DNA from: Ministeria vibrans ATCC 50519
Taxonomy: Eukaryota > Protista > Filasterea
Reading direction: 5' to 3'
DNA length: 64,000 nucleotides
Assembly: GCA_943704425.1 (NCBI GenBank)
Contig: CALSCP010000524.1
Span: 20,562-84,561, forward strand
A program made the translations under genes and the position numbers. Numbering within the stretch: the first letter of the stretch is position 1; every line of letters starts with the position of its first letter. Below, piece by piece: positions 54,902-60,183 of the stretch. Under the pieces are notes generated by a model. That model was given only the letters and a program-made list of their open reading frames with translations. It was not told the DNA's origin and made no database searches.

Positions 54902-56085
54902 TTAGCCGGGTCCAATGTCAGAGCCATCGCAAATATTATTAATAGTCGGGCCAAACAATCGGTGGTGCAGTGGGGAGCGGAATAAATTTCCCGCATCGTG
55001 CCGCTCGTAGATTTCCTTGGCACGCTCAAATTGTTCTTCGCCATACGACTGGGGAATATCGCGGCGCATCATTTGAGCGTTCTGCCACGGTCCATTGCTT
55101 GCATTGTAGCCCCAGCCTACGCGAGGAAGTGTTCAAGTTAATATCGATAAAATAATAATAATCGGAATCAGATTAACAATAACGAGACTTGTATCATTAT
55201 TCGCATTATTATATGGTCGCACCTTTGCTCCATTCAGGGCGGAGACAGTTTTTCCGATCCTCATTTTGCACATCGGGGCCCTACGGAAGTATGTAACGTG
55301 TTTGAGCAGCGAGTCACTTTAGTGTTGCAAGTCAGGCGTTACGTAGTGTGATTGCAGACCCTCCTCGACTCTCTTGAAGAACTCGTACGAGTCGGGAGTG
55401 TGTCGACGGACACCCGAAACTGTGGTGGAGAGAGAATGATAATGATTTTGATTAATTCGGCGTAATAATGATTGTTAATTACCGTATTGAGTGGGAAGAG
55501 TGAGAGCGTCGAGCCAGACGACCGTGTTAAGTTCGGGTTTACCGGGCATTGGTGCCGACGACGAGAGCAGAGGGGGGTCGTATTCGCCGATTCCAGATAT
55601 CTCGTTTGCCTAAAATAAACCAAATTAATATTATTTTGCACAGATTTGAACGATAAACTAACCTTGTCAATAGAGGTAATACGAATTTCCTGGGGAATTG
55701 ATAAACAGGTACATAATTAGAACAAGAACAATGATTAAAATCAATAGCTGTTAAATAAATTTTTCTTACGATTGGCCCAAAGATCGGGTAAATATCTCTC
55801 TCGGCGTACTCCTGAAGGAGTTCGGTCAGGAGAGTGTAGTAGAAGACAGCAACGGACTGGACTTGACTACGACGAGTAAGCACGGCGTAGCCCATGCATG
55901 TGATGCGTAGCTGAAAAATAAAATGATTGTGACGAATGGAAGAGCTGATTTTGTTGATATTAGTGGCGTACGTACCGTGTGTGAGGTAACATCTAAACAA
56001 GAGGAAGAGAAAGGAGGAGGAGGGAAAAACAAAGTGATAGAGCCGTACGATGCAAAAAAAATACGGGTCATTNNNNNNNNNNGGG

Positions 56086-56116
<31 letters not shown>

Positions 56117-56435
56117 ACAAATTGATAAAGAGAAAGAGAGATGAGGGAGAAACAAAGATGCGATGGAGAAACAAAACGTGATAGAGAAAAGAGAAACAAA
56201 GTGATCATATAAGAGGGAAAGTATACGTCGTAAAATGAGAGAGAAAAAGACGTGGTAGAGCGGGTTAATACAAATGAAAGACGGTATGGAGATCAAAATG
56301 ACTTACAAAGAAGCAGATCGCGCGACTGACCGTGCTGTGTAGGCGGTGCTCGGCCAGCCAAAAGGTTTGCCAGTCTTCCATACACATGTGAAATTGAAGG
56401 ATACATTGCCCAGCTAAACGTGCAAGGTAAATTTA

Positions 56436-56494
<59 letters not shown>

Positions 56495-58457
56495 CATTAT
56501 TATTATTATTATTATTATCATTAGGCGTAGTGTTAATATAAAACGTATTATTGTTTTCAATTTTCGTACTTGTGGAGCGTTGCAGTGTTCAACCAGTTGG
56601 TCAGTCGATTTAGTGCCCAAATCGCAAAATTTTTCGTGTATGGCTCACGAACGTATGGAAATCGCTTCTCGCCGACCTCCTTCCAGACCTGCACATGGAA
56701 AAAGATATGTAGATTATTGTAGTGAACTAGAATATTATGGTGTTGGCATTGTTGACACTCGCTTATTATTATTAGTATTATTATTCTTCCGCACCTTCAC
56801 CTACGACGAGAACGAAACACAATGGGTCAGTGATAGGTTTGAGACGGACAAGAGCGTGATAATTCATGCGTACCCACGCCCTCTTGTAGCCAGGAAACCA
56901 AATAACCTCCACACGTCCGTTTTCGCGCATTAGTCGGCCCAGAGAATCGACTCCCGCACGCGAGTCACCTCCAAAGAGTCGCATAGTCTCGATAAGCTTG
57001 CTCGTCTCCTCCAAGTAGTAGTTGCGTCGCACTCGCAGCGTCACATCAACTAGAAAACAGCGTCCCAAATGAACCAAAAACGCCGGTGCGTCTGCGTCCG
57101 ACCGTGAGAACGTCTAATAAGAAAAATAAAAAGGGGTTTATTCTTGTTGATAAAAGTAATAAAAATCACAAGACCATGAAATTTTTGATGACTTGCCTTG
57201 AGAACGTATTGCATTTCATCTCCCTTTCCTTCACTCACAACTGCCGTAAACTTGACAATTTGATTGCTCAAACTACCAAGAAAGAAGAGGCGGAGAAATA
57301 ACAAAAATAATTAATAACAAAAATATTTTATTATTATTATTAATAAACATTATTATTGCATCGTTTTTACCTTCCCATGAATTTGGTGTTGACGCTTCCA
57401 TCGCCAAAACGCACACTTGTGCCGTGTGCTCCAATTGCAAGTGCTCCGCCCAGACTGATGTCACCTATTATATTAACATTATTATTTTTTGGTATCAATA
57501 ATAATTGATTTCGAATTCGTACCAATGCCGGGGAGATTTTGGAATCCGTAGCCAGTGGCGGGAGTTTCCTGGACGTATGGGCCAAAAATCCACCAGTACC
57601 AGTCTTTTAGCTTGTTCCATGCATAGAACCAAAGAGTGTCGAATACCTGGTGAAAAAGAGAGGAAACATCGAATTTTTGAAATTATTAAAATTGATTGTG
57701 GTTGTTGTTTTTGACGTACCTGCTTTGACTTGGACACTTTGGTAACAACAAAATCGTCCTCCTCCTCCTCCTCCTCTTCTTCTTCTTCTTCTTCTTGATT
57801 AAAAGCAACAGCAGCAACAGCAGCAGCAACAGCAGCGTCACCGGCATGCGCAGCACCGGCAGCACCAGCATTAGCAGCGTCAGCCTCATCGGGCGCATGA
57901 TTCTGAGCCTCGAGCCACTCAGTCATCATGTGGATGGTGGTACCACAGCCAAAGGTTACGTTAGCCTCGTCCTCACCTTTGGTTCCTATCACGCGTTCGA
58001 TATAGGGCGCATAGAAATGCTCGAAGATCTGCTGGTCTTCGGGTTCCTGCAAGAACAAAGAATAATAAAATTAATAATTATTATTATTACTATTATTATT
58101 ATAGTAATAATTATATTTTTGTGGGTGACATTCGAGACTTACGATAGGAGGAAAGAGGCTCAAAGGATTGATATCTGCGGCAGGAGCAAAAAAAGCGGGA
58201 GAGATGCCAGGGAAGGCGTTGACGTTGATATCGTTGATTGTTTCGCCATTTGGTGCGGTGTCAATGGGAACGGGATTCACCAAACGGTTGCAGTCCACCA
58301 TGAGCACATTGCGACGCGACTGGCCATTTTCAACGGCAAGTGGCGACCAGTTGTGGTGGCGACCAACTGGACGCACCACATATCCATGTTTCAGCGCCCA
58401 GTTGCACACCGCAATGACCTGGAAAAAATTGTCATCGTATAAGTAATTATTGTTGTA

Positions 58458-58547
<90 letters not shown>

Positions 58548-58557
58548 GTTATTATTA

Positions 58558-58641
<84 letters not shown>

Positions 58642-60183
58642 TTGTTGTTGTTGTTGTTGTTGTTGTGTTACGAACCAATTAATTGCTTATGATTGTTATT
58701 ATATTAATTTTGGAGTTACAATAGTAACGTTTTCTGTACCTGTTTCATCGTCTCGGGCTGGACGACAAACACTTTGGAGAGGACGGTGAACCACGACCAG
58801 TTACGGAAAGTAAATGTACCGCCGCGTACACATAGTCCATCGGGCAAATCGTTGAAGATGTCGCTGACGTTGCGCATGTCGTCGTTCCAGTCGAGACCCC
58901 AATCGTCAACAAATGCCTCCTCATGATGACGGTCGGACGGCGGTCTTGACGCCAAGTAGGCGCCCAAAAAGGTCAACACGAAGAGGATTGTCCTGTCGCG
59001 GCCGCTCATATACTCAAACGCGTTCACGTAGTCCAGTGTGCCGATGTAATAAGCGCCAAGTGCGGCTGCAGCTGCAGAGACGAGCAAGTCGTAGATATGG
59101 AAGAGACTAAGGCGATTCTGCAGCTCGTCCCGAAGAAAATCATTGAGCACCCATCCACCCGTGGATGTCCTTGATACAATATAAAAAGTAATAAAACAAT
59201 AATAATAATTATTATCAATCTTATTCTTGTTACTAATGTTAATGCCGCACTTACATGGAAAATATTTGCATCAAGAAGACCGAAAGAAACGTGAGGAGCA
59301 TTTGCAATGCGCCGATCAAAAGAAAGTACGAGTTGTAGAGGCGACCAAAAGAATAGAAGAAAGTCAATACGAGGAGAAGGCTGATCATAAAGCTGCGCAC
59401 TTTCCACGTCTATCACAATATAGAATAATACAAACAGAAAACGTTGATCAGCAATCGTATTGCAACAGCGGTGCTCTCTTAAGCAAGAAACACTTGTTCT
59501 GGATCCTTTGCTTTTTGTCTTATTTACCCACGTCGTCGGAAAGTTGTAAGCTTCAAACGAAATCTTAGCCAGGAAAAGAGCCGCAGGCATCTGCGAGCTC
59601 TCCGCGTGCATGCACTCGACAGGGTTGCTCCAGACCTGTACAACCTCCTCATAGCAGTAGTACAAAACAATGGCATAAAGCCATGCGTGAAGCGCGCGAC
59701 GGCTGTTTCGCTACGCACAAAAAAAAAAAAAAAAGGAAAAAAAATTCAGCTGTCGAAATGAACTTTTGTGGAGAAAACAAGACGAAAGAGGGGAAAACAA
59801 GCGATTTCGCTTGTAGTAGCGAGCGCGGAGGCGGAATGCGCAGACGTCTTTCGCCATCAGGGTAATGAAGGTCTCAGTGTTTGAATGAGACGCATAGAGT
59901 GGAATGAGATGGCGTCGATTGGGGTTTTGAGGGTTGAGACAAAGAAGTGGGTCGAACCCACGTCGAAATATTTAAGAGAGCCATCGTCCAAAACCCAACG
60001 TACCGGCGATGAGCTTGTCTGGAAATGGGCATCCTTGAGCACCATCCCCCTGTCGATCCCGTAGCAGAAGAAGAGCGAGACGAGAAGCCTCCCAAAAGGC
60101 CAGAAGAAGAAGAACTTCTGAAACAGGCCGAATGTGATCATGTGGACCTCTTCAGGCACCTGGCCTTCTATTAGGGTTGTCAT
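54902..60183 (-). CDS. Class II (VAO/PCMH-fold, covalent FAD) cholesterol oxidase-like protein with N-terminal transmembrane region, more than 15 exons
   Basis: Spliced motifs in order: FRNWS, CNWALKHGYVVRPVGRHHNWSPL, GDISLGGALAIGAHGT, GSLSNQ..TAVV, FLVHLGR, GRVEVIWFP..WVKVW, LRITCMGYAVLTRR, YPIFGPIEIRIT, VWLDALTLP, RPEWSKGWGY, FRSPL..RL. Confidence 0.88.
56436..56522. repeat. (TAT)n microsatellite, intronic
   Basis: Direct sequence. Confidence 0.9.
58460..58666. repeat. (TAT)n/(TGT)n microsatellite, intronic
   Basis: Direct sequence. Confidence 0.9.

Follow-up and report, generated by a model that had tools for sequence, protein, structure and literature searches.

How a eukaryotic genome came to hold an oxidase of a bacterial type, and on which alcohol that oxidase may act, are the questions raised by one gene of the filasterean protist Ministeria vibrans ATCC 50519. 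The gene lies in a stretch of 64,000 nucleotides (nt) taken from contig CALSCP010000524.1 of the assembly GCA_943704425.1 (positions 20,562 to 84,561 of the forward strand), here called the window, and it occupies the minus strand from 60183 to 54902, with the ATG at 60183-60181 and the stop codon at 54904-54902. An earlier note, made from the letters of the window alone, had read it as a class II cholesterol oxidase of bacterial type that was domesticated as an intron-rich eukaryotic gene. The present analysis supports that note on the family, on an origin in bacteria and on domestication; it does not support the placement in the clade of the named cholesterol oxidases. The gene is a eukaryotic, intron-rich and apparently membrane-anchored member of a bacterial oxidase family; taken as a whole, its description as a PF09129 oxidase that derives from bacteria and carries both introns and a membrane region is the best explanation, and we regard it as quite probable.

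Family membership and catalytic residues

The predicted spliced frame comprises 20 exons, 2979 nt and 992 codons with no internal stop, which agrees with the earlier count of more than 15 small exons in an open frame. The motifs read in the earlier note are found in the same order, i.e., FRNWS in exon 4, HNWSPL in exon 5, IWFP in exon 10, EIR in exon 16, RPEWSK and GWGY on either side of a split codon between exons 19 and 20, and FRSPL in exon 20. All family, structure and homology searches were run on single exons, and the exons were joined by coordinate only for the counts of stops and phases. The PF09129 domain (Chol_subst-bind; cut-off 25 bits), with which the note had proposed to check the family, passes on three minus-strand stretches, 55542-55940 (37 bits), 54905-55132 (30.4 bits) and 55478-55609 (25.7 bits), and gives a weak match on 56784-57113 (13.9 bits). 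In a six-frame search of the genome, four stretches of the gene pass the PF09129 cut-off, and 55436-55582 passes when it is counted together with its in-frame neighbors. The FAD_binding_4 domain scores 15.8 bits on the exon with HNWSPL, scanned as a single exon, which is below the cut-off of 26.4. On a 575-position family profile made from the relatives found in this study, exons 4 to 9 fall in order on positions 44-221, and the exon-wise alignment as a whole covers positions 44-573 in order. Among solved structures, exon 5 matches the FAD domain of 1I19 (E = 2.5e-8) and also 3JS8 (E = 1.9e-7), exon 10 matches 1I19 (E = 2e-4), and exon 15 matches positions 354-400 of 3JS8 (E = 7e-5). The structures matched by the oxidase exons are the class II cholesterol oxidases 1I19, 2I0K and 3JS8; the only other match is weak and unrelated (3BL5, E = 0.12). 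On these matches, the gene is assigned to the VAO-fold flavoprotein oxidases of the PF09129 family, which is the class II cholesterol oxidase family.

The class II enzymes used for comparison were those of Brevibacterium sterolicum (BCO2; 1I19), Chromobacterium sp. DS-1 (3JS8), Burkholderia cepacia ST-200 and Rhodococcus (ChoRI and ChoRII). The predicted protein shares with them the two-domain fold family of FAD_binding_4 and PF09129, the order of motifs from FxNWS to RPEWSKGW, and the equivalents of the His linked to flavin adenine dinucleotide (FAD), Glu311, Glu475 and Arg477. In the alignment with 1I19, the second His of HHNWSPL falls on that of GAMHGWTPL, the FAD-linked His121, so that HNWSP would carry the flavin-linked His, as the earlier note had stated. 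Likewise, the Glu of GRVEVIWFP falls on that of GGAEAIWYP, which is Glu311, the gate residue of the class II enzyme. The EIR of exon 16 aligns with EIR or EMR of bacterial relatives, and the EIR motif of a sister copy in the same genome (described below) aligns with chain residues 423-425 of 1I19, i.e., Glu475 to Arg477. For the Brevibacterium enzyme, His121 is described as the residue that binds FAD, and Glu475 and Arg477 as crucial to the reaction (PMC7588053). As judged from these alignments, the predicted protein retains the full catalytic apparatus of a covalent-flavin alcohol oxidase.

The FAD_binding_4 fold is also common to the eukaryotic sugar-lactone oxidases ALO and GULO (PF04030) and to DHCR24. 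Their C-terminal domain family is different, however, and the exons of the window gene match PF09129 and not ALO. On bacterial PF09129 proteins, ALO matches are weak, and the look-alikes in the Atlas have lower scores. These enzymes are vertically inherited eukaryotic cousins and are not the source of the window gene.

The same set of exons bears on whether the gene could be an unexpressed relic (pseudogene), or an artifact of the assembly or of bacterial contamination. An assembly gap of 10 N is located within the gene at 56073..56082, flanked by poly-G and GAG repeats, and a lone PF09129-like fragment on the same contig would mean that decayed copies exist. The gap, however, lies inside intron 13 (56306-55993). 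Exons 13, 14 and 15 join as SRDLLL-Y-VTSHT-LRIT, which compares with SRNLLHYVEDTTMRVT in bacteria and SRDQLLYVSPFTLRVS in the sister copy; exon 13 takes profile positions 366-381 and exon 15 takes positions 389-435, and exon 14 fills the interval, so that the three are contiguous to within approximately one position. Since the conserved motif is rebuilt across intron 13, the gap is intronic, no exon is missing, and the frame is sound. Neither a stop nor a frameshift interrupts the 992 codons over their 20 exons, and the catalytic residues are kept. The 19 AT-rich spliceosomal introns of the gene, together with the eukaryotic genes that accompany it on the 84.5-kb contig (an EGF/vWA gene with EGF repeats, a Nop-domain gene and a NACHT/TANC1-like gene), rule out bacterial contamination and bear out the reading of an intron-rich eukaryotic gene. 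A relic or an artifact is thus considered very improbable.

Sister copies, relatives and origin

The genome assembly searched has 29.7 Mb in 2860 contigs, of which the window is C524:20562-84561. PF09129 matches were found at two further loci, on contigs C775 and C659, and both are intron-bearing copies. The C775 copy has fewer introns, and its last 141 residues are in a single exon; the C659 copy has lost its 5' part at the end of the contig. Identity among the three copies is 36 to 45%, with 45% over 315 columns between the window copy and C659, and in both of these an intron interrupts the codon that follows RPEWSK, with identical position and phase. An intron before EIR in the window copy and C775 was also considered as common to both and was rejected; because of an offset of 2 nt and a different phase, the EIR intron of C775 is not counted as shared.

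A lone PF09129-like fragment is located on the contig of the window at C524:19056-19175, approximately 1.4 kb before the window start. It has an LLxYV...RVT motif, scores 20 bits, and shows 47 to 75% identity to bacterial relatives over 24 to 35 residues, with an N gap close by. No other exons were detected near this fragment, which may be a decayed fourth copy.

The relatives of these copies are overwhelmingly bacterial. HMMER, run exhaustively against 1.84 billion representative proteins with the last exon of C775, returned 123 relatives, the best with 48% identity. A profile search yielded 544 relatives (E <= 1e-10); of these, 120 were listed, and those with a name are all bacterial. The names among the matches listed include Nostoc, Sorangium, Frankia, Micromonospora, Blastocatellia and others, and the bacterial members number in the hundreds and come from many phyla. 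Atlas clusters with PF09129 are 98 to 100% bacterial, so that the family is chiefly bacterial, as the earlier note had stated. No eukaryotic relative closer than the bacterial ones was found among the 1.84 billion representatives, in the word-index searches or in the Joint Genome Institute (JGI) metagenomes, where few of the matches carry names; the JGI metagenome scan was made with exon 10 and found no relative. Two points weigh against a strong reading of this absence: the exhaustive scan used an exon of the sister copy and not of the window gene as its query, and the absence is weaker because the collections may omit the source genome and its near kin.

The phylogeny was computed with IQ-TREE (model LG+C20) from 73 rows in a quick run and from 39 rows in a careful one; both trees are unrooted, and the row of the window gene in them is its merged exon-wise profile alignments. 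The window copy and C659 pair with support of 100/98, and C775 joins them with an ultrafast bootstrap of 82 and a value of 89 in the Shimodaira-Hasegawa-like approximate likelihood ratio test. The three protist copies nest in a larger clade with 99 to 100% support, and all 11 of the 11 members checked are bacterial, either by name or by a gene neighborhood that is dense and same-strand and contains sigma factors, transposases, response regulators or biosynthetic genes. The nearest relatives belong to this bacterial PF09129 subfamily, i.e., NIES4103_14020 of Nostoc sp. NIES-4103 and metagenomic proteins that are Planctomycete-like, Bacteroidota-like or from Actinomycetota. They have the same catalytic motifs and share the clade with the protist copies, and identity between the window gene and these Nostoc and metagenomic proteins is approximately 40% over 460 columns. 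The bacterial proteins have approximately 540 to 620 residues, and their genes are unbroken and lie in dense bacterial neighborhoods, some of them in natural-product clusters. The window gene is more distant from the cholesterol-oxidase-type clade (35% identity) and from two springtail proteins (31%; Allacma fusca CAG7719742.1 and CAG7829746.1), the latter being the only other eukaryote-labeled PF09129 members found in these searches. The springtail proteins form a different, well-supported clade of their own, which points to an independent entry into a eukaryote or to contamination of the springtail assembly.

The direction of the transfer has to be weighed against the reverse, in which this lineage would have had the family from its eukaryotic ancestors, or bacteria would have obtained it from eukaryotes. 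The protist clade lies near the base of the bacterial subfamily, its exact sister has weak support (35/33), the trees have no root, and the collections searched cover eukaryotic genomes only sparsely. On the other hand, the successive outgroups, the Endozoicomonas clade and then the cholesterol-oxidase-type clade, are bacterial or bacterial-like; hundreds of bacterial members are spread over many phyla; and the two copies of the sole other named eukaryote, the springtail, are only 31% identical to the window gene and fall in another clade. A eukaryotic origin is, in our judgment, extremely unlikely. An old transfer from bacteria is well supported by the nesting of the protist copies in the bacterial clade, and the phylogeny, which the earlier note had proposed as a check, agrees with the horizontal transfer proposed there. 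The transfer would be old because the copies are only 36 to 45% identical, share an intron position and have a host-like codon usage; the codon usage of the oxidase gene matches that of the other genes in the window.

These data are best explained by one old acquisition from bacteria, after which introns were gained and the gene was duplicated, with the direction deduced from the nesting and the outgroups. An ancestor of the organism would have taken the oxidase gene from a bacterium; the gene would then have gained spliceosomal introns and duplicated to at least three copies, and the window copy would additionally have gained an N-terminal multi-pass membrane region and an insert in its FAD domain that is of low complexity and rich in aromatic residues. 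The hosts named for the VAO-type cholesterol oxidases are actinomycetes and beta- and gammaproteobacteria (PMC7588053), and no description of a eukaryotic member was found in the searchable literature, where these enzymes are treated as bacterial. The copies in the M. vibrans genome represent a three-gene family of a bacterial oxidase type that has become fixed in a eukaryote.

The membrane region and the probable substrate

Upstream of the oxidase fold, exons 1 to 4 contain approximately 255 residues with five to seven hydrophobic stretches, which are predicted to form a multi-pass membrane region (all exon coordinates refer to the minus strand of the window). Exon 1 (60004..60183) begins with the first ATG of the open frame and has 60 codons, one hydrophobic helix and a GTACGT donor in phase 0. 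Exon 2 (59528..59710), with 61 codons of the membrane region, has a poly-T tract with a TAG acceptor and a GTAAAT donor, both in phase 0, and there is no other copy of it in the genome. Exon 3 (59255..59409) is very hydrophobic, with approximately two helices, and lies between a TAG acceptor and a GTAAGT donor whose phase 2 is compatible with the acceptor of exon 4. Exon 4 (58740..59169) has two further hydrophobic helices, a sole in-frame Met, a signal-anchor-like stretch and the start of the oxidase fold with FRNWS, its end taking family profile positions 44-75.

The Met of exon 4 offers another reading of this region, in which exons 1 to 3 are a separate small membrane-protein gene or an untranslated leader and the oxidase starts at that Met as a soluble, secreted protein. 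The stretch after the Met, which is charged and then has approximately 14 hydrophobic residues, resembles a cleavable signal peptide, and retention of intron 3 would bring in a TAA at 59253 that closes a membrane protein of 173 residues. The C775 copy has no similarity to the membrane region upstream of the oxidase fold. Several points weigh against a membrane region in the oxidase itself: no relatives of it were found in the genome of the organism, in the word-index protein search (made with exon 4) or in the ESM Atlas, and the codon-usage score of exon 1 is weak, its modeled frame being nevertheless the best of the three. Pfam searches of the N-terminal exon pieces gave only chance-level matches.

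Against a start in exon 4, the part of that exon upstream of the Met has 53 open codons with no ATG, with a codon-usage score of 0.22 in frame versus -0.29 and -0.70 and a coding-type G+C content by codon position. Since these 53 ATG-less codons look coding, translation would have to start in an upstream exon. The three successive upstream junctions keep the frame and use the strongest local splice signals, codon usage scores highest in the modeled frame for every one of exons 1 to 4, and exons 2 and 3 score as coding in that frame. The secreted form is therefore unlikely, and frame continuity and codon usage support the membrane region as part of the predicted protein, its topology being a prediction from the hydrophobic stretches. 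The bacterial class II enzymes carry twin-arginine (Tat) signals (PMC7588053). The model of the window gene, unlike these enzymes, has no such RR-type signal; its multi-helix region ends instead in a signal-anchor-like helix.

A second addition is found in the FAD domain, where exons 6 and 7 contain an insert of approximately 85 residues that scores as coding. Exon 6 (57720..58046) has the FAD-domain strand VTFGCGTT... and then the Ala-rich, low-complexity part of the insert with a run of 12 Glu, and its codon usage is of the coding type. Exon 7 (57523..57646), placed by junction analysis, has the aromatic-rich part (5 Trp in 41 residues) followed by GYGFQNLPG. The insert is not present in the C775 copy. 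Both the membrane region and the insert distinguish the window gene from the class II cholesterol oxidases, and neither is found in any of the bacterial subfamily proteins; none of the relatives examined combines the oxidase with such a multi-pass membrane region.

The proposed mechanism is that of a covalent flavoprotein oxidase. FAD would be attached covalently to the second His of HHNWSPL, and two electrons would be drawn from the secondary alcohol of a lipid, with a sterol 3-beta-hydroxyl as the leading candidate. The electrons would be passed to O2 to give a ketone and H2O2, with the equivalents of the Glu-x-Arg pair and of Glu311 serving as the base and the oxygen gate, as in the Brevibacterium enzyme. 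The enzyme is likely to oxidize the secondary alcohol of a lipid to a ketone and to release H2O2; that this alcohol would be a sterol 3-beta-hydroxyl has roughly even odds. Because it follows a signal-anchor-like helix, the catalytic domain probably faces the outside or the lumen of an organelle, which would parallel the secreted bacterial enzymes. The genome has one squalene/oxidosqualene cyclase, so that sterols or similar triterpenoids should be at hand.

The earlier note had placed the gene with the Brevibacterium, Burkholderia and Chromobacterium enzymes; in the tree it belongs instead to a separate sister subfamily. Unlike the class II cholesterol oxidases, to which it is approximately 35% identical, the window gene stands in a separate clade together with bacterial proteins, and it is eukaryotic with 19 introns. 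This separation weighs against a sterol as the substrate, as do several other observations. The clade that contains the assayed cholesterol oxidases is distinct from that of the window gene, and against 3JS8 the Mycetohabitans protein P0238 scores 707 bits, compared with 340 bits for the nearest bacterial relative of the window gene. One bacterial member of the clade is located in a cluster for a trans-acyltransferase (trans-AT) polyketide synthase (PKS). The Nostoc sp. NIES-4103 member, which among named bacterial relatives is the closest, is also in a natural-product cluster, and its locus (AP018288.1, 1697498-1717312) encodes a sulfotransferase, two PhyH proteins, a JmjC-type protein, a radical SAM enzyme, a WelO5-type halogenase, a flavin monooxygenase and a LanM-like lanthipeptide synthetase. 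Since two bacterial members lie in natural-product clusters, the substrate may not be a sterol. Elsewhere in the family, the bacterial proteins P0038 and P0102, of approximately 970 residues, have a terpene synthase domain (PF19086) fused to a complete FAD_binding_4 and PF09129 oxidase, which hints that parts of the PF09129 family act on terpenoid alcohols.

The same gene with the same origin could thus oxidize a different secondary alcohol, i.e., that of a polyketide, a terpenoid or another lipid, as the bacterial subfamily probably does in biosynthetic clusters. This alternative is drawn from gene neighborhoods alone. The catalytic residues, by contrast, are those of the sterol enzymes, the 35% identity to the cholesterol-oxidase-type clade is little below the 40% to the gene's own clade, and a eukaryote that makes sterols has an obvious substrate. 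We give a non-sterol substrate somewhat less than an even chance. With an uncharacterized sister subfamily and natural-product neighbors, "cholesterol oxidase" is, for the window gene, a family label.

If the predicted enzyme acts on sterols, a sterol-making protist would have an O2-dependent route to 3-ketosteroids and H2O2 at a membrane surface, with a bearing on predation, on defense and on how steroid chemistry arose. Otherwise, the gene draws attention to an uncharacterized bacterial subfamily linked to natural-product clusters that is worth assaying. The biological roles proposed in the earlier note are speculation. In a more far-reaching scenario, a secreted bacterial flavin oxidase would have become a membrane-tethered, outward-facing sterol oxidase that attacks the sterol-containing membranes of prey or competitors and releases H2O2 as it does so, or that makes 3-keto-4-ene steroid signals; we consider this scenario decidedly unlikely. 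If true, an outward-facing sterol oxidase would be a route to steroid-like chemistry that is independent of the dehydrogenases of animals.

Exon structure and neighborhood

As a transferred gene, the oxidase would be a clean example of intron gain, including exons of 6 nt and 17 nt and a GC-AG intron. Eighteen of its introns are GT-AG and one is GC-AG, with donors that are mostly GTAAGT or GTACG, and the G+C content is 13 to 47% in introns versus 33 to 57% in exons. The stop-to-stop translation of window 54500-60600 gives short open segments in series with AT-rich AAT-repeat stretches between them. The exon borders were drawn from three sources, i.e., a listing of frame-keeping pairs of GT or GC with AG, tblastn of bacterial relatives onto the DNA, and the alignment of open segments to the family profile.

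Exon 5 (58143..58418) encodes the part of the FAD-binding domain with HHNWSPL. Exon 8 (57371..57464) contains GGALAIGAHGT, the flavin-binding loop, at family profile positions 167-194, and shows 57 to 89% identity to six bacterial relatives over 18 to 23 residues by tblastn. Exon 9 (57197..57272), with GSLSNQIV..., is followed by the GC-AG intron (57196-57114), the AAG|GCAAGT donor of which is typical and which gives the same spacing as in the relatives. Exon 10 (56874..57113) runs from FLVHLGRCF to GRVEVIWFP and scores 80.6 bits against the family profile; a longer version that reads on through ...VRMNYHALVRLKPITDPL... was rejected as intron read-through, the alignment of the relatives ending at approximately 56868. 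Exon 11 (56795..56800) is a predicted 6-nt micro-exon that encodes Val-Lys (AG|GTGAAG|GT), proposed from homology and splice phase. It restores the W-x-K-x-W of the family with the same spacing, as AW-VK-VW compared with PWVKTW in bacteria and AWMKTW in the sister copy.

Exon 12 (56570..56688) takes family profile positions 311-336 and has a GTACGA donor in phase 2. Exon 13 (56307..56413) ends with ...HGQSRDLLL in phase 1. All three of its frames are open and its codon usage is ambiguous, which weakens the model at this point; its frame was set by homology and splice phase, on which the two alternative open frames were rejected. Exon 14 (55976..55992) is a 17-nt mini-exon, Y|VTSHT, with a TTTAG acceptor, a GTACGT donor and phases that fit its neighbors; it is predicted from homology and phase only and matches the YVxxxT of the relatives. 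Exon 15 (55770..55910), LRITCMGYAVLTRR..., starts with LRITCMGYA and is covered by the PF09129 match of 37 bits. Exon 16 (55663..55689) encodes EIRITSIDK with the equivalents of the Glu475-x-Arg477 pair. Exon 17 (55483..55609) has the PF09129 match of 25.7 bits, and exon 18 (55343..55419) takes profile positions 483-502. Exon 19 (55223..55280) ends with ...RPEWSK in phase 1, and exon 20 (54902..55116), which has the PF09129 match of 30.4 bits, continues with GWGYN and LFRSPL to the stop codon.

Introns 4 (58419-58739) and 12 (56414-56569) have a G+C content of 13 to 14% and consist mostly of long (AAT)n microsatellites, and AAT runs of a like kind are also present in introns of the C775 copy. 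Elsewhere in the window, the plus strand contains an intronless open reading frame of 1045 codons at 21868-25005 with six Helicase-associated (HA, PF03457) repeats, for which the word-index protein search returned no relative. Next to the oxidase gene, a very large EGF-repeat gene on the plus strand, with its 3' end at 52742-54523 and a C-terminal membrane helix, converges with it and ends approximately 380 nt from the oxidase stop codon.

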